Numbered from the stretch's first letter, positions 1 through 7,351 are shown. The stretch is 64,000 bases of DNA from Entomortierella parvispora E1425 (GCA_020891255.1 BQFW01000010.1:1178001-1242000); one strand, 5' to 3'. Numbers and translations are program-made. The notes: generated from the sequence alone by a model not told the origin.

Positions 1-9
1 GCCAAAAAA

Positions 10-3000
10 ATGAAGAAGGAGAAAAACGACATCGCCGACAAAATGGAAGAGCAAGAAGACTGGGCTCCGCATCACGAATATCTCCAGACGGTTCGAGATA
101 ACTTTGATGAGCTATGGCGAAAGGCCCTGAACAAGAACCGGTCAAAGGCGGACTCTGTGCCAAAGGAGAAGGAGCCTGAGGTCCAGCTGCGAACCATCTC
201 CGTACCATTAGAGAAGATTCTGCGAAAAGACTTTCAAGATGCCGATAAAACGGCCATCAAAGAATTGCTGACTCAAAAACAGGAAGCAATGTCATCTCAT
301 ATGGAGGAGCTCCAGTCGGCACTCGCCATGGCCCAACTAGAGGTTAGTGAACGAATGGACATGCACTGGTGGAGCATCATGAGCTGGCAATTGACCGTAT
401 GTGATCCTTTTATGGTTTGTAGGTGCTGCAAGGACGGTTTCATTCCGAGCAAGGCTCCACCAATGAATTCGATATTCGTCAAATTCTCCCTGAGGCTTTT
501 AAAATCCGCGATACCGATCTCATGGAGAGTCCTTCTATCAAAGTCCCCCTGGTTGCAGACGATTTCCAGCTGAACGTAAAGAGATATTGTAACGAGGACG
601 CTCGGAGGTCACCATTCGAAAGGGACAGCAAGGACCTGTTCAATCACGATTGTATCGTGTATATCGCAGCACGGCTCGTACAAGAAGTCTCCGAAAAAGG
701 CAAATCAAAAAAAAAACAGAAGCCTGGCAGTGATAACGAAGACTTTGGTTCAGATGGTAGCGACGCCGAAGTATCTGACCAAGATCCTGAGGAAGATGAC
801 CACGACGTGTGCGAATCTGGTCCAAGCAGTCTAACAAAGCCATCGTTATCGGCAGGTACCAAGCGCCAACGGCCTTCCACCAATGCCAGCCAGTCCGCAA
901 AAGCTTTGACGCACCCTGTTTGGAACGAATTGGCGGCTTTCGTCAGACAAGCGTGGAGTGGAGATGATGAATTTGCCACGAATGCTGTATGTCCAAAAGG
1001 CATGTCTCAATCACGCCCAGAGGTCTTAAAGACAATTGCCACCAGCTACCATAACATTTGGAAGGCAAAGCTATATCTCGACCTCAAACGGGCGGTTGTC
1101 CGTTACTTGTTGCGACTTCATCTTCGACCGCTTGGGGAGCAGCGATATAGAGATCAGAAGAAGAGGTTCGCGGAAAACAAGGCGTCAGAGGCAGCCGAGA
1201 AATTGAAAAGTCCGTATGTGCGCAGAAAAGCCTACCGCTGGACAGCAAAGAAGGTGCTTGTTCAACTGGACGAGGCCATCAGCACCTGCAAGACGGCTTG
1301 GAATGGTAACATCTTGGAGTTGCGGGATCCTCTCGACTTGAAGGATAGACAGTCCCGGATTGCTAGGGTCAGCAACGTCTTCCGACTGCTCAGAGATGTT
1401 GTTGACAAGACCAAAGCTGCAGATAAGGACATTGGTGATCTCAAGCTCAAACTTGACCGGGGCGGTAGCAATGATCAAAGTAGCAACAGCGAAGTAATTC
1501 CGACTTCGTACGACATCATAGAGTTGGCTCAGGAAGGGGATGACTTTGATGGCGAGTGTGATCTTCAGGAGGAAGACGACTTTGATGGCGAGTGTCAAGA
1601 GGAAGACGGCTTAGACCAGGCAGAGACGGAATCGGCACCCGAACCGGAGGTCGTCAGAGGTAAGGCAAAAAAGTTTGGCTTTGAAATACATCACAAACTC
1701 AGATGTCGCCCTAACAATAACGACTTGTTTTGTAGATGCTTTGGAACCAACAGGCAAACACCTTCGTGGGCTGGAGGCTGTCACCTGCCTCTTGCTTGAC
1801 AGATCTGACTGCCCTTCTCAGGTTACGCCGGCATTCGTTCGTGAATACCTCTTTGATGAGGAGATGTTCAACGATACTGAAGTCAGCACGGTCGTCCAAA
1901 TTGTCAACCAACTGCGACCCTATACTCCAAAACGAGATGACGAAAACAAGCTACATGAACATATTCTCGTGTTGGGCCCTTTCTGCATGCTCGCCAATCA
2001 CCTACTGCGCGCAATGGGCTTTTCCGACTTCACTCGTCGGTTGTTCCCAATTTCCTCATGTGGCAAATCTCACCCACTCCCACTGAACCCGAAAGGGATC
2101 TGCGAGGTATTGTGTGCAGAAGATCCAGGGCACTTCGACGTTAAGAGCAACGGCATGACAGTGTCATATGTGAACCGAGTGAAAAACAACGAGAAGACTA
2201 TTCTCGGCGCATTTTTCGACTTGGAACTCATACACGACATCTGTGGGAAACATCACCTTAAATTCGAAAACAGGTAAGGGCTATTCCGATTATTTTGTGC
2301 ACTGGAATAAGGAATCTGAAATTGACAAAGCTCTACCACTCTCCTCCCAACTCTAGACTCCAGTATGTCAATCCCTGGACAGTGCAAATCCTTGCTTCCA
2401 AGACAACGAAAGACGCTGCGCCAGATTTGTGGTCGGAAAAAAAGAAGAAGCACATCAAGCCGCCGGCCAGCTCCAAACATCCCTCTCGCCAACAGGATCT
2501 CATATCGTCAGGTATCTCGGCAGCGAGGGCCAAAGAACTCGCTCAAAGGTTGAGGAGACTCTGAAGGTGAAGACGAACGAGCTTCGACAACTTAACCGCA
2601 CCGTGACGAAGCAGACAAAGCGCCAATGTCTTTTGAGTAACACCATGTATGATCGTATGGCAACTCTGAAAACCATGGACGTGGATAACGAAGTTGTGGC
2701 CGATGCTGGTCGTGTCTCAGCTGAACAGGTGGAGATGGAAGTAGATGAAGGCGTCTACGATAGTACTCCAGAACCGGTCACTGCAGAGTCTATCCAGCAA
2801 GCCTACCGCGATTTGGGGGAGCAACGCAAACTTGTTCAGAGCACTCGAGCACTTACAGTTCCACTGGTACTGGAAATCAAAAACCTCAAGGAAGAAAAAT
2901 ACGCACTGAACAAGTATTCGAGAGAGAAAGCAGATTCGACAACACCTTCGACGTCGTCGCCGCGTGCTAGATCAAAGGGGAGAAAAAGGTCTGCTACAAG

Positions 3001-4539
3001 GGTTGGATCCACATCCACTGATGGCACCAGCGCCAATGTCAATGTCAATGTCACCACCAGCGCTACGGAATCTCCAAAGTCGCCATACACATCGATGCCC
3101 TCTGGAGCACGGCCAGGGTCAATGGATTATATTGAAGCTACATGCATCAGCAAACTCAGAGAGGATATTGCCGCGAACAATGAGAGGACGAGCACCCGCC
3201 AGATGACTCTGGTTCCTGGAGGAACGGACCCTGGTTCGAAGACTCTCTTCGAGACGGTAGTCATATCTGAATCAACTCTTATCAGCCTTCAGAACCGGTT
3301 CCATCTACTCTCGGATGAATCCGACAGTCCTCCAGAGGCTATCGCAGACCAGAATGTCTTTGAGGAGGCACTGAAAGTGAGCAGGAAGGGGGCGCTCGCC
3401 CAGATCAAAATTCCGGATACCCACAAAACGACCGTGGCGCAGATCCGCCATTTGTCAGGACTCACACAACAGGCAAAGACCAGAAAGAGCGCACTCGAGA
3501 GAAATCAACACATTGAGCCCCTGTTTTCTGAACTGGGTGAAAGTTCTCCTCACAAAGCAAGGACTGTCGCCGATTTTAAGAAGTCCGCCACGAACCGCCG
3601 AAAAGCCAGGGACAGACTCCGCGCCTTTGAGTACTCAAAAAGCATGACCAGAAAGAAAAGAAATGTCGCACGACGGCTGAAACGGACGTATGACCACATG
3701 GCATCCAAAGAGCGACAAGCGTTCAAGAAACTGGGCCAGGGTAAGCCGACTAATGTTCAGACTACTACAGTGCTCCCTAGTACCAGTCGTACTAATCCAA
3801 GATCTTTGTTACTATGGGGTGTTCATTAGGCAATCAAGCGGCGACGGGTCAGGAAATCGCAACAGATCTGCCATCCACACCATCGTCATCGATATCACTT
3901 GCAGCAGCTCAGCGCAAGTCCAACGGCTTTTGTTCATCGTGCGGAACCCACCATAGACCGGAGCTCGTTGCAGACCCGACTCATCCGACAGGAAAACGAC
4001 TTGTCCTAAAACACCTGAGAAACTGTCCAAAATCTCTTCCAGTCGTCATTCCACTCTTTTTTCACGGGGCTGCCGGCATGGGGGTAGGCTCTAGACTGAA
4101 GGGCAACTGCAGGATGGGCGGGAACGAAATACCCCGCAGACACAAGAACCATGGGCCAGTGGGTAAAACAAATGAGCACAACTCTTCAAAAACCTGCCCA
4201 TTTTGCTTTAGGCCAATTCGACTTGCACGAGGTCGGAGGATGAAGAAGGGAACAATGAAGCTCGTTCGCCTGAATGGCGCCGTGGAATGTACCAATCCTG
4301 AGTGTATTTCGCATCGTTGCGGCTATACGATCAGGGGCCGTGATCAAAATGCCGCCCTCAACATCGCCGTTGCCGGATACACCCAGCTTACCACTACCGA
4401 GAGGACCACACTCCCTCCATTCTCCACAACCACCAAGCGACTTTGGTCGCACCCCCTCACCAACACCGGATCAACAAGACCGGAAACACAACTTCCAAAT
4501 CCATCCGGGCGATGCGACGACGAACTAAACGTGGTTTAG
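10..4539 (+). CDS. Giant Fanzor-like (eukaryotic TnpB family) RuvC/zinc-ribbon nuclease, 5 exons, one -1 frame break; may begin upstream of the window
   Basis: GT-AG introns 343-422, 1660-1735, 2274-2356 and 3741-3829 join the ORF-track pieces in consistent phase. The exons total 4202 nt, so restoring one base between 2437 and 2548 gives 1400 aa + stop. Motifs: RuvC-I GTDPG (D 3227-3229); Gly at the canonical RuvC-II position (LFFHGAAG) with the downstream Fanzor-type Glu in TNEHNSSKTC (E 4174-4176); zinc ribbon CPFC...CTNPEC (4195-4305); RuvC-III RDQNAALNI (D 4342-4344). Confidence 0.85.
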
Positions 4540-4885
4540 ATTACGTAAGTATCATCAGGTCAAATCGATGCTGTGTCATATCATTACTATTAGCCTGAGA
4601 CTTAACCCGTCACTTACTTTGTTTACTTTGCATTTCTCTTGGTGACAGACACCGTACGTTGACAGTAAATGCAGCTGCGGTAAAACGGTAACGGTTCACC
4701 GCTGTAATCAACATCGTCATCGTCGCAGATATCGTCTTGTCTTGCTTTCCAGTTTTGTCCAAAGCTATTCCATCCTACACCCACTGCAGTTCTCTCTATT
4801 CTTTTCTCTATCGGCGCCAACTGGGACCTGAACGCGACAGCGCAGGTTGCATATACACGTGATTGAAAGTGTTGGTGGCGTATAG
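4540..4885 (+). ncRNA. Candidate Fanzor omegaRNA scaffold region
   Basis: Lies immediately 3' of the Fanzor stop, where omegaRNAs are expected. Visible pairings: GTTGA 4658-62/TCAAC 4708-12 enclosing GCGGT 4677-81/ACCGC 4698-4702; hairpin GACCTG-aa-CGC-GACA-GCG-CAGGTT 4825-4848 with a GNRA loop; CTAT-cg-GCGCCA 4808-19 with TGGCGT-ATAG 4876-85. The folding was done by eye, not computed. Confidence 0.35.
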
Positions 4886-4905
4886 TATTTATTGATGAGA
4901 CGGAC

Positions 4906-6980
4906 TTAGGCTGTCTTCGCCTTGACTTGCTCCTTGTTCTTTTCTTGCCACTTTGGGAGGAGATAGAACTGGTACGTGGGGTACGCTGTGAGAAGGGTCA
5001 GGAAAGTAATCCAGAAGTAGATAACAGCTGGTGGTGCAGGGTTTGGGAACTCGCCCTGACCGAACTTGAAGATAATCAATACTTCTGTTGCAATACTGCC
5101 GATCAAGAGCCACGCCTGTGGTCCGATACGTTTGCAGTTACTAGATGGAAGGGGAACCATTGCGTGGGTTAGAATGGCATTAGACATGAGGTGGAAATGG
5201 AGGGGTCTGTAAGGACATCCACAGAAACTTACTCATCATGGAAGTATTGATAAGCCTCACGGACTCCAGGGATTCCAAACATAAAGTAGGCAAAGATGCG
5301 AATGACATTGACGGGATGGGCTGGAGGCAGCCATAGAAGGGTCTTCAGGTAGAACGCGTTCAGCTCGCAGATCAAAAACTAGAAGCATGATGGAGGTTTT
5401 AGTACTCGAGCATAGTGTATGTTTCCGGAGCAAGTAGGTCCATGCCTCTGAAGACTCACCATGGTAAGCAGGAAGATCACGGTGCAGTAGCTCTTGAAGC
5501 TCTTGGTTGAATCCCATTCAAACTTTGTCCATGACTTTGGTGTGAACTGCTGCATTGTGCGCTTCATCTTTCCTTTCAGGGTTGGAATCTCAGCAAGGCC
5601 CTGCCAAGAGTACTGCTTCATCTCAAAGTACTCGCAGGTCTTAACACCAACGTACATTCCCAGCCAGTTACACAAAAGCACGTCCAGGATCCACTAAGAT
5701 CACAAAAAGACATAGTAACGGTGTTAGAGCGCTCTTCCGCCTGTCATTGTTCCTAGTGTTCGACATGATGCTTGGTTTGAGACTTACGTGATCCCACCAA
5801 CACTCGTCAAAGTTGTTGAGTTGATGAGAAAGTGAGTACTCCATGACTTCAAACATAACCGACAGAATCCAGCAGAAAGTATAGTCACGCAAGATCAGCG
5901 CCTTGCAGAACCATCCGATCGCGTGGGCCAACACAAACTCGTCAAAGACTTGGCTCTATTCAGAAAAAGTAAGAGAATCGTTTCAGTTAAACAATGGGTC
6001 ACAACACTAGATCACGTTTTGCATTTGTTGGGTCCAGGGGCAGGCCAATCACTGCTGTATGATCATACCACGATGTTGTCCCAAGTCAGCTCACAAGCGT
6101 CGCCATATGACTTTTCAGGAAGAGGAACTCCGAGGGAGGGATCAAGATATGTAAAGAAAACTCTTGCATCATGCTTGTTCTATTATATTCAGGAATTGCG
6201 AGTGAGTAAACAGGTGCCAGAGGCATGAGTGCATGATCCATTTTTGTCTATGGCTGTTGTCGTCATGGTTCTGAAAGAGTGGGTCGTCCTTACCTGGAAG
6301 AGCAGAAAAACCAGGAACAGCTGGTAAACAACTCCTAATGACAGAACAACACGCCAGAGAGCGGGATGGGGCCGTAATAACAGACTGTCCCTGAACTGAA
6401 GCATTCCAAAGACACAGAAGGCCCCGATGCAGGCTAAAAGTCCACTGAAAATGTAAAGGAGTGTGAGGATTATAAGAGGTTGGGCGAGCATGTTCCATGG
6501 TGACGCCCCACTTCTTTTGTCCCAGCCTGGAAAGTTGACTTTCAGGCGCTTACATTTTGACGTTTGTTGTTGTGTCATCAACTTCGGGTGTCAGGGCGAC
6601 GTAAACGAGGACAAGGAGCATTCCCCCCAGGATTGTAAGGGTTCGAGGCGTGTCTATTGTCGAAGACAAAGAGCAAGTCAGCAAGCCAGTCTCCCACTTT
6701 GCCGGCACTTGCCCAGGACTTCCTCTGTTACCGACGGAATCAACAGTCGACAAGGGGCCATGTTCTTACAGAAGAAGCCGACGGCAGGGTCCTGTTCAGC
6801 AGGTGTCTTCTGGAACTGGACCGAAGTATCCTTTGTGAACCATTCAGGCCTGTCATCAACAGATGACTCTGATGCAAACGACATTGACGATGAGCTCGAG
6901 GTTTGGCGAGACTTTTGACTAAAGTTCCCTGTCCTGGTCCCGTTCAAGTCCTGGGCTAGGAGCTGATCCTTGGATGTCAT
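4906..6980 (-). CDS. PTDSS: Phosphatidylserine synthase, base-exchange (PTDSS1/2, PSS family) type, multi-exon
   Basis: Exon peptides [71 protein letters not shown] and [11 protein letters not shown] match animal/plant PSS motifs. ATG 6980, TAA 4906-4908. Confidence 0.92.
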
Positions 6981-7351
6981 CTCTCTACGACCTTGTTTTT
7001 TTCGCTCTCAATTGTTAGAATAGACTGCGAAGGCTGCACAGGCAAAAAGCGCGTGGAGCAACCTGTTGTTGATGAATGGACGAGGATCGAGATGAATGAG
7101 TCGAGCCTCTTTTAGAAACAAAAAGAGGTCCAGCCGATGGTCACCGTGTTGAAAGAGGGGATTCGAGACAACAACAGAAGAATGAAAGAAGAAAAAGAAA
7201 AAAGAAGAAAAAAAAGGGACGAATGAAAGCAGGGACACGACTGATCAGCTTTTTTCTTTTTTTGCTTGGCCCGCCGGTTTATTATTTACATTTGCGCAGG
7301 GTTCGCACGCGTGGCCAGCGTGGGGTGTCTTGCATTTACAAAGGGTTGCCG

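Follow-up and report, generated by a model that had tools for sequence, protein, structure and literature searches.

The left edge of a 64,000-nucleotide stretch of DNA from the soil fungus Entomortierella parvispora E1425 (hereafter the window) holds a Fanzor-like coding region split over several exons, and raises the question of what protein it encodes, where its gene begins, and whether it belongs to the host or to a mobile element. Fanzors are, to our knowledge, the only known eukaryotic RNA-guided DNA nucleases. We conclude that the window probably contains the last 4,654 bp, on the 3′ side, of a non-autonomous element that measures 6.0 kb, has ends of the Tc1/mariner type and carries a single Fanzor1-type gene. 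This sole gene of the element has seven introns, six in the coding sequence and one directly after the stop codon, and encodes a Fanzor1-type nuclease of ~1,727 aa.

Gene layout and splicing

All five coding segments in the window have GT..AG borders and compatible phases (Table 1). Contigs from the run X2, which are intron-free, skip exactly positions 343-422, 1660-1735, 2274-2356 and 3741-3829, and the genomic run X1, made from the same sample, contains none of these splice joints. The four spliceosomal introns of an earlier note on this DNA are confirmed by these exact joints and by the GT..AG borders, and the X2 contigs join the exons (10-342, 423-1659, 1736-2273, 2357-3740 and 3830-4539) as that note first proposed. 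The transcripts seen in X2 derive from another copy than the one in the window.

The 5′ end of the gene lies outside the window. P0003 and P0161, two close paralogue proteins (92-98% identical), read VAKKMKKEKNDIADK across window bases 1-30 and reach 86 and 327 residues further upstream than the window, respectively. Two upstream coding exons (~327 aa) are seen in L001, a copy at a different locus that is 98.6% identical over window positions 1-4654; with these two exons to the left of the window the full protein comes to ~1,727 aa. The start at position 10 and the size of ~1,400 aa that had been suggested must therefore be given up: a look upstream for the true start finds the coding frame continuing past the left edge of the window and into two more exons.

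Table 1 Features of the Fanzor1-type gene and its element in the window. Window exons are numbered 1 to 5.
Feature	Position	Strand	Evidence or remark
Third coding exon of the gene (window exon 1)	1..342	+	5′ end beyond the window's left edge; frame open from base 1; ATG at 10 is an internal Met
Intron, 80 nt, GT..AG	343..422	+	Exactly skipped in X2 contig
Exon 2, helical N-terminal extension with acidic and basic low-complexity stretches	423..1659	+	Alignment A2; BLAST collinearity with relatives of 1,285-1,626 aa
Intron, 76 nt	1660..1735	+	Skipped in X2 contig
Exon 3, first domain of the Fanzor core (putative WED/REC side)	1736..2273	+	VIA-align and family BLAST
Intron, 83 nt	2274..2356	+	X2 joint 2271->2355, cut +2
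Exon 4, basic stretch, long coiled-coil hairpin, Ser/Thr-rich linker, RuvC-I, helical insert	2357..3740	+	Secondary structure of model m468ac0b3c8ba; motif conservation
One-base frameshift site	2544..2545	+	CAAAG in window, CAAAAG in other copies
RuvC-I GTDPG, D codon	3227-3229	+	Within exon 2357..3740
Intron, 89 nt	3741..3829	+	Skipped in X2 contig
Exon 5, last coding exon	3830..4544	+	Pfam PF07282, motif conservation, alignment to SpuFz1
G.AG.GVGSR strand, Gly where canonical RuvC-II has Glu	in 3830..4544	+	
Relocated Glu, in TNEHNSS	4174-4176	+	In last coding exon
Zinc ribbon CxxC...Cx4C (CPFC/CTNPEC)	4195-4305	+	In last coding exon
RuvC-III Asp, in RDQNAALNI	4342-4344	+	In last coding exon
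Hairpin CCGG-N10-CCGG, candidate omegaRNA scaffold element	4466..4483	+	In tail-coding region
Disordered tail, then stop TAG at 4537-4539	in 3830..4544	+	
Terminal intron, 104 nt	4545..4648	+	Begins 5 nt after stop
Last 6 nt of element (ACACCG) and flanking TA	4649..4656	+	Right end at 4654

Fold and catalytic motifs of the Fanzor core

The Pfam family PF07282 (Cas12f1-like TNB) matches exon 5 with E = 1.7e-5 and 25.3 bits, just below the gathering cut-off of 26.3, and Pfam gave nothing above noise on window exons 1-4. Single-sequence searches of exons 4 and 5 against solved structures returned chance matches only. In the family alignment A1, the motifs GTDxG, T[DN]E..[TS]S..C..C and RD are preserved in nearly all of the 40 aligned members, and all four Cys of the zinc ribbon are conserved in the family. 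The family profile aligns the Glu and the Asp onto the catalytic residues E541 and D606 of SpuFz1 (numbering from PMC10432273), at a marginal profile similarity (E = 0.016). Judged by these alignments, the Glu and Asp are the predicted catalytic positions of the Fanzor1 type, with the Glu relocated before the zinc ribbon. The earlier reading of a RuvC domain with a zinc ribbon, Gly at the canonical RuvC-II position and Glu before the ribbon agrees with the motifs, with the PF07282 match below cut-off and with the SpuFz1 alignment; the three catalytic residues that it took to be retained (D 3227, E 4174 and D 4342) are in place and, by sequence alignment, conserved throughout the family. No XPG_N or XPG_I match was found by Pfam at E <= 5 in the window pieces, P0161, full-length P0155 or P0156, nor any XPG domain at E <= 0.01 in 14 other long relatives.

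Structural comparison was made with an AF2 model of the paralogue P0156 (pLDDT 71.6), which is 50-60% identical in the core and stands in for the window's own protein. The best Foldseek matches to it were SpuFz 9cey (E = 2e-4), 9cez, 9ceu and PpFz, followed by Cas12 and TnpB. VIA-align gave Z 14.8 for SpuFz 8gkh, Z 13.4 for PpFz and Z 10.2 for GtFz; the SpuFz alignment covers model residues 163-843 and SpuFz residues 51-633, so that model residue 163 meets SpuFz residue 51, with 259 residues aligned at 5.4 A. Set against SpuFz1, TnpB and Cas12, as had been suggested, the paralogue model is thus closest to SpuFz, PpFz and GtFz.

The N-terminal extension

From its N-terminus the protein consists of an alpha/beta domain coded outside the window, a helical extension of ~500 aa and the Fanzor core, in which a putative WED/REC part is followed by the long coiled-coil hairpin, RuvC-I (Asp), RuvC-II (Glu), the zinc ribbon and RuvC-III (Asp). 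The N-terminal domain is weakly OTU-like (Foldseek against the PDB, E ~1; VIA Z 3.5-4.8; AlphaFold DB probability 0.57-0.97), and it gave no match in Pfam or in a profile search of solved structures. An OTU cysteine protease was considered and rejected, as no Cys or His is conserved (alignment A4).

The helical part carries acidic linkers and basic stretches, the latter of which could serve as nuclear import signals; basic stretches spotted by eye in the protein sequence include KGKSKKKQKPG and SKGRKRSATR. The exon of the helical part contains a conserved block, HP.W...P.G.S.T....ATN..NIW.G.IY...R.LLR.HLRP, in the 23 family members of alignment A2. The best conserved block on the N-terminal side is the domain of exon 3 (25-50% identity), at which relatives of 700-800 aa begin. 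Searches of the extension revealed no recognisable enzymatic family, and an Atlas feature search reached 0.69 at best. With residues 210-800, the model of the N-extension has Foldseek matches (E = 3e-6 to 5e-4) to the first 480-510 residues of Mucorales proteins in the AlphaFold DB, which implies that the helical part is older than the Mortierellaceae. These Mucorales proteins (A0A1X2GGQ0, A0A1X2HEI3, A0A168HZD0 and others), compared through the N-extension model, are uncharacterised and, at 750-1,150 aa, shorter.

A giant family in the Mortierellaceae

A phmmer search with exon 5 found 368 relatives. Collinear relatives of 1,285-1,823 aa are present in seven Mortierellaceae species, with the same block order in at least 10 lineages. 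As predicted from these sequences, the giant architecture of a weakly OTU-like N-domain, a helical extension and a core with coiled-coil insert is recurrent across the Mortierellaceae, and the proposal of an expanded subfamily in early-diverging fungi is upheld by these proteins. Published Fz1 proteins are mostly 600-700 aa long (PMC11423790); a nuclease of ~1,730 aa is more than twice the usual Fanzor size. We found no description of an oversized Mortierellaceae form of Fanzor in the literature searched. The accessions of the long relatives do not occur in the available portion of the supplementary text of Saito et al. 2023, which does not imply that they are absent from that survey.

Such a length might be an artefact of the gene model, in which an N-terminal unknown protein and an adjacent ordinary Fanzor of ~870 aa are read as one gene. 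The relatives of 700-800 aa that begin at the exon 3 domain would fit this, as would the gaps that the X2 contigs leave over exon 4, which is not gaplessly covered in X2. However, one X2 contig joins window exons 1, 2 and 3 and includes the exon 3/exon 4 joint (99 letters on the shorter side), another joins exons 4 and 5, and the frame is continuous save for a single missing base. Given also that the block order is identical in at least 10 lineages and that the short relatives are fragmentary contigs or partial models, we consider a fusion of two gene models extremely improbable and treat the protein as one.

State of the copy in the window

The spliced length in the window is 4,202 nt, or 3n+2. 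An extra A behind 2544 is carried by X1 (254/254), X2, X3 and the paralogous copy L001, and it joins both frames; the one base that the earlier note wished to restore within 2437-2548 is this A. Since it is present in every other copy or run, the window copy is either freshly broken or mis-assembled, and with one base missing in exon 4 it is, as assembled, unable to make the full protein. Splicing around the site was also considered: on paper, the frame would be restored by a micro-exon at 2357-2362 or by an acceptor at 2383, at 2413 or at 2425. This bypass was rejected because X2 is spliced to 2357 and the extra A stands in all other copies.

The missing base might instead mean decay of this copy, and possibly of the E. 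parvispora family as a whole, with real frameshifts, no full-length protein and motifs that reflect recent descent and not present function. L001 has at least four further shifts (+G at 713, -C at 3325 and two in an upstream exon), and another copy, L002, is truncated and interrupted, all of which is in keeping with decay. We nevertheless think decay unlikely. The X1 and X2 contigs are free of such shifts wherever they cover these sites, the gene is transcribed and correctly spliced, and pN/pS between the window copy and L001 is 0.33, with 27 of 57 changes synonymous (binomial p = 4e-5). The catalytic motifs are preserved between genera whose sequences are more than 50% divergent, and one-base indels in repeats are also expected from an imperfectly polished long-read assembly. 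The gene of this family is transcribed and under purifying selection.

The carrier element: ends, copies and mobility

The element begins with CGGTTGAAGTC, ~1,349 bp before the window, and ends with GACAGACACCG, with TA as the flanking dinucleotide. At the right end, identity with L001 stops at 4654 and an X1 contig diverges at the same base, and unitigs of X4 and X6 that are similar to 4604-4656 terminate at 4656. In a third copy, seen in X1, the shared sequence extends 10 bases further (to 4664), which makes the right end uncertain by at most 10 nt. Compared in register, the left end matches the reverse-complemented right end at 14 of 24 positions (chance rate 0.0004); a generic inverted-repeat scan missed these ends, which are visible only by in-register comparison of the termini. 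On the left side, both L001 and L002 have TA next to the element; on the right side, TA is present in the window and absent from the flank of L001. In X6 and X8, which come from other strains and were searched for an empty site, the flanking gene is ~88% identical and similarity stops at 4803.

Counting of genomic copies, likewise proposed earlier, showed that the element is multi-copy: besides L001 and L002, assembler depth in X1 is ~254 over the gene vs 76 over unique flank. No further copies lie within the 64-kb window. A Ty3-type element cuts L002 short, and a TIR transposon interrupts it. As its copies have sharp ends, lie at different loci and in one case have been disrupted by other transposons, the element does not fit the possible domestication that had been envisaged. 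The search for element ends and a transposase succeeded in its first part, with short inverted ends flanked by TA, and failed in its second, as no transposase is encoded in the element of the window family. Three sister families (L003, L004 and L005) contain remnants of an HTH_23 + DDE_3 transposase inside TA-flanked ends.

A terminal intron and a candidate omegaRNA

The 11 letters that follow 4544 in X2 match 4649-4659, which places a fifth intron of the window at 4545-4648. The other E. parvispora families and, in the corresponding position, four further genera likewise have an intron that lies at the stop codon or spans it; its 5′ part, GTAAGTAYYCTMAGSTCAAAT, is conserved, and it ends 6-9 nt from the right end of the element. 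In 9/9 lineages, a hairpin of the form CCRG-N7-11-CYGG is present 79-126 nt upstream of the terminal intron (background rate, 0.045 per 200 nt). It is read in two codon phases and is hence frame-independent, and its arms are CCGG/CCGG in the window family vs CCAG/CTGG in the others. Folding energy of the 3′ region was not significant (z between -1.2 and +0.4), and RNAalifold on 7 sequences gave a weak -2.4 kcal/mol on a MAFFT alignment that is partly misaligned.

The terminal intron and the frame-independent hairpin point to a putative omegaRNA. The intron sits between the hairpin region and the flanking DNA that would be the guide. Its removal could join scaffold to guide; alternatively, transcripts that retain it could be set apart from the mRNA as omegaRNA precursors. 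Either route, if true, would mean a spliceosome-dependent guide RNA, and we know of no TnpB, Fanzor or Cas12 system that has one. That splicing decides the fate of the transcript in this way, and that the ~850-aa extension couples Fanzor cutting to a host pathway, is a speculative proposal to which we attach little credence.

Comparison with known systems

The closest known system is the Fanzor1 protein SpuFz1 of Spizellomyces punctatus (PDB 8GKH, 9CEU-9CEZ), also from an early-diverging fungus and the best structural match of the paralogue model. Both have RuvC with a TNB zinc ribbon, the RD motif and a Glu that directly precedes the ribbon, in DEYKTS..C..C of SpuFz1 and in T[DN]E..TS..C..C of the window family; the WED/REC part of the SpuFz1 core has a putative counterpart here. 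Both are carried by single-gene, multi-copy elements with inverted ends and without an internal transposase. The element of SpuFz1 measures 2.1 kb, has inverted repeats of 30 nt and encodes ~640 aa, whereas the present element encodes ~1,727 aa in 6.0 kb, has TA-flanked ends with short, imperfect repeats, and carries seven introns in its gene, including one at the stop codon. Added relative to SpuFz1 are the ~850-aa N-terminal extension and, before RuvC-I, the coiled-coil hairpin and the Ser/Thr-rich linker.

PpFz1 of Parasitella parasitica (PDB 9CF0, 9CF1), a Fanzor1 from the Mucoromycota, also exceeds the norm in size through an added domain; its match covers model residues 163-841 and chain residues 134-844. 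The addition in PpFz1 is the FRI domain, which has ~100 aa, lies inside RuvC and binds cyclophilin (PMC11423790), whereas the additions in the window protein are N-terminal and before RuvC-I. TnpB of IS200/IS605 (ISDra2; PDB 8H1J) and Cas12f share the RuvC/TNB fold with the window family (Z 9.5-11.5), and TnpB and the window element presumably both take their guide RNA from the element's own 3′ end. In contrast, TnpB is prokaryotic, has ~400 aa, no introns and its Glu at the canonical RuvC-II position, and its partner is the HUH transposase TnpA, in elements without TA-flanked inverted ends.

Proposed function and significance

By analogy with SpuFz1 and TnpB, we infer that the protein would bind an omegaRNA derived from the 3′-terminal part of its own transcript, with the DNA just beyond the right end of the element as guide, and that the complex would cut matching DNA beside a short motif. 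Such cutting would help the element to persist or spread, and to move at all the element would need a Tc1/mariner DDE transposase from elsewhere, acting in trans.

The family might instead have kept the Fanzor fold and lost the guide-dependent nuclease role, with the extension acting in RNA-guided DNA binding or regulation or as a transposition accessory. Nuclease-independent offshoots of TnpB are established, and the extension, which lacks a recognisable enzymatic family, is conserved as strongly as the core across the Mortierellaceae (alignment A2). But the known nuclease-dead offshoots have lost the RuvC residues, while here nearly every member retains the D, E and D residues together with the zinc ligands, and we hold such a loss to be very unlikely; an active nuclease is the reading that we prefer.

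Standard annotation leaves genes of this kind as 'hypothetical proteins', often split by frameshifts. A family form of 1,300-1,800 aa means that Fanzor has gained substantial new modules in the hands of eukaryotic hosts or of their transposons. Through the stop-codon intron beside the transposon end, a connection of splicing with guide-RNA production becomes testable. The extension may act in nuclear import, in the recruitment of chromatin or repair factors, or in control of the partner Tc1/mariner transposase, and its role could show how RNA-guided nucleases come to be tamed or targeted in the eukaryotic nucleus.

A spliced Fanzor gene with one frame-breaking difference

On the plus strand, positions 1–4654 of the window contain five long open segments, distributed over three frames. 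They are joined by four GT..AG introns with compatible phases, as in the five-exon assembly of the earlier note, and all of the C-terminal motifs that the note had read are present at their codons. Exon 5 resembles the Pfam family PF07282 (Cas12f1-like TNB, E = 1.7e-5; 25.3 bits, cut-off 26.3), and no Pfam family was matched by the other exons.

Features of the Fanzor gene, its element copies and their surroundings
Feature	Location	Strand	Remark
Exons 1–5	10–342, 423–1659, 1736–2273, 2357–3740, 3830–4539	+	
Introns	343–422, 1660–1735, 2274–2356, 3741–3829	+	
GTDPG motif	Asp at 3227	+	
LFFHGAAGMGVGSR motif		+	
TNEHNSS motif	Glu at 4174	+	
CPFC and CTNPEC	4195–4305	+	
RDQNAALNI motif	Asp at 4342	+	
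Terminal intron	4545–4648	+	Starts 5 nt past stop
Imperfect direct repeats	1529–1615		30–36 nt; code for acidic DDFDGEC stretch (linker, end of exon 2)
Multi-exon neighbour gene	4803–7110	−	
Open frame, 2,267 aa	13284–20087		GETGTGKT, GETGCGKT, GPTSSGKT
6.9-kb DNA transposon	L002:3005–9890		DEAD/Helicase_C and DUF6589 genes
Transposase modules	L003:330–2691, L004:464–2744, L005:319–2160		HTH_23 + DDE_3 remnants
Crinkler genes (PF20147)	L002:164–2626, L003:1–178		
'Ghost' right end	L002:18254–18360		
Tandem repeats	L010:6620–6860		About six of ~39 nt

Three sequencing runs under one species label contain DNA of the gene. The four introns are exactly absent from contigs of the run X2, and none of the four intron-skipping joints occurs in contigs of the genomic run X1, which shares a single sample with X2. 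This makes X2 almost certainly a transcriptome, despite its record label 'DNA?', and the introns predicted in the earlier note are observed to be spliced; none of the runs listed is labelled RNA. One X2 contig joins exons 1, 2, 3 and the start of exon 4. A second joins exons 4 and 5, continues to 4544 and ends with 11 letters equal to 4649–4659, indicating a further, terminal intron.

The spliced in-window length is 3n+2. One extra A after 2544, which joins both frames, is present in all of X1, X2 and X3 and also in L001, a paralogous copy; it is the base that the earlier note had wanted restored at 2437–2548. Alternative acceptors that restore the frame are possible on paper but are countered by this A. 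Given its presence in three runs and L001, the window copy is either privately broken or carries a homopolymer error of the assembly; the Logan contigs used for this comparison drop minority variants.

Catalytic core

A profile of 40 core sequences, compared to solved structures, matched SpuFz1 (8GKH, E = 0.016). In the aligned block, DEYKTS..C..C / HG..C.NP.C / RD, the corresponding SpuFz1 residues are E541 and D606 (construct offset 394), which are metal-binding and catalytic (PMC10432273). Nearly all members retain the GTDxG of RuvC-I, the relocated Glu, all four Cys and the RD.

As a stand-in for the window protein, the paralogue P0156 (931 aa; 50–60% identity in exons 3 and 5) was modelled with AlphaFold2 on the 40-sequence core alignment (pLDDT 71.6). 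Foldseek, a check proposed in the earlier note, ranked SpuFz first, with PpFz and GtFz also at the top, then Cas12o, Cas12p, Cas-phi, Cas12f and Fanzor2. VIA-align gave Z 14.8 for SpuFz (model 163–843 vs chain 51–633), 13.4 for PpFz and 9.5 for ISDra2 TnpB. Motif conservation and these matches support the predicted RuvC and zinc-ribbon Fanzor architecture, with its catalytic residues kept. Ahead of RuvC-I the model has a helical hairpin of 100 residues, along with a Ser/Thr-rich linker that is disordered.

A long N-terminal extension conserved in Mortierellaceae

The reading frame is open from window base 1. Exon 2, used as a query, retrieved the 300-aa P0003 of the window's own genome, whose cluster led to P0161 (551 aa). 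Both are 92–98% identical to exons 1–2 and reach 86 and 327 residues, respectively, upstream of the Met at 10, so that this Met, previously taken as the start, is internal. L001, a copy on BQFW01000004.1 with 98.6% identity to window 1–4654, includes two additional coding exons and two additional introns upstream; the gene has six coding introns and one terminal intron. The earlier estimate of ~1400 aa or more corresponds to the part in the window alone (about 1,400 aa), and the full protein, summed with the P0161 extension of 327 residues, is about 1,727 aa.

A phmmer search with exon 5 of 1.84 billion representatives gave 368 matches at E ≤ 1e-3, including annotated 'hypothetical proteins' of 1,285–1,823 aa from six other species: Mortierella alpina, Mortierella sp. 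AM989, M. antarctica, Linnemannia hyalina, Gryganskiella cystojenkinii and Actinomortierella ambigua. Modicella reniformis joined them in a later search, as did four further lineages of E. parvispora. All long relatives exhibit the same BLAST block order (part of exon 2, exon 3, RuvC-I region, exon 5), in agreement with the expanded subfamily in early-diverging fungi suggested earlier. Against Pfam they matched no family except for weak TNB and coiled-coil matches. Since relatives of 700–800 aa start at the exon 3 domain, sequence comparison defines exons 3 to 5 (about 875 aa in the window copy) as the putative Fanzor core and the earlier part as an extension, which is conserved blockwise between genera in an alignment of 23 members (A2).

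A model of residues 1–800 of the relative P0155 (pLDDT 68.9) has an alpha/beta domain at 26–190 and, after it, helical regions. These helical regions resemble the first 480–510 residues of unnamed Mucorales proteins of 750–1,150 aa (AlphaFold DB, E down to 3e-6). The alpha/beta domain, coded outside the window, exhibits a weak likeness to OTU proteases in structure comparison, but this identity was rejected, as the domain has no conserved Cys or His and no profile match. An XPG/FEN1 domain is absent from the window-family Fanzor.

Mobile element and its copies

Identity between the window and L001 ends at 4654, and a loose end in X1 equals the differing right flank of L001. The left end common to L001 and L002 is TA followed by CGGTTGAAGTC. 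SpuFz1 forms an element of 2.1 kb that has one ORF and 30-nt inverted repeats (Saito et al.), whereas in the window family the left end and the reverse-complemented right end match at 14/24 positions in register (chance rate 0.0004). TA lies beside three of the four ends seen. The element has no transposase and consists of a 196-nt leader, the gene and 115 nt. Elements of the sister families L003, L004 and L005 (TTGTGC...GCACAA, flanked by TA) include HTH_23 and DDE_3 transposase remnants. Between these families the upstream modules are 87–92% identical and the Fanzor genes less than 72%, which points to an exchange of modules or to a recent capture by a single transposon backbone.

The L002 copy is disrupted by two other elements; a Ty3-type element cuts it short at window coordinate 894. 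The 6.9-kb transposon in the Fanzor element leader at L002 is bounded by perfect terminal inverted repeats of 222 bp, with a target duplication of 9 bp (CTGAAAGAT). With a multi-locus element, sharp ends and a copy disrupted by other transposons, the possible domestication raised in the earlier note is not supported. Of the 57 coding differences that separate the window copy from L001, 27 are synonymous (pN/pS 0.33; binomial p = 4e-5). Crinkler genes adjoin two different Fanzor element copies.

The neighbour gene on the minus strand is only ~88% identical in the runs X6 and X8, which have the same species label and in which its introns are replaced; this label seems to cover deeply diverged strains. 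X6 and X8 contain no sequence of this Fanzor element save a high-copy 53-nt match to 4604–4656. The 2,267-aa frame, with its several Walker-type motifs, resembles a portion of a midasin-type AAA ATPase gene and is ordinary chromosomal context.

Terminal intron and hairpin

All families and genera examined have an intron that lies at the stop codon or spans it. In the E. parvispora families the 5' part of this intron is conserved and its end lies 6–9 nt from the right end; two families form their stop codon from those last bases. The hairpin CCRG-N7-11-CYGG lies 79–126 nt upstream of the intron in 9/9 lineages, in two different codon phases (background rate 0.045 per 200 nt), and is compensatory CCGG/CCGG in the window family. 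Folding energy of the 3' region was not unusual and RNAalifold was weak. Intron and hairpin are a lead as candidate guide-RNA features.

The 'ghost' right end at L002 combines the conserved terminal intron (GTAAGTATTCTCAGGTCAAAT...) with the sister-family TCACAA followed by TA, and its upstream sequence does not resemble a Fanzor coding tail. In P0068 of Mortierella alpina, tandem repeats (GCGGAGCCGGATCACGGTGTCGGTGC...) in the C-terminal tail lie just ahead of the conserved hairpin.

Comparison with known Fanzors

Fz1 is common throughout fungi 'incertae sedis' (Saito et al.). Among the papers searched, none linked Fanzor to Mortierella, Mucoromycota or OTU. Fz1 proteins are mostly 600–700 aa, a notable exception being the 100-aa FRI insertion of PpFz1 (Xu et al., PMC11423790), whereas the window-family protein has about 1,727 aa. 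The window gene is genuinely of Fanzor1 type, unusual in both its size and its architecture, and lies in an element of probable Tc1/mariner type; the gene is transcribed, spliced and conserved in Mortierellaceae, with one frame-breaking difference in the window copy.
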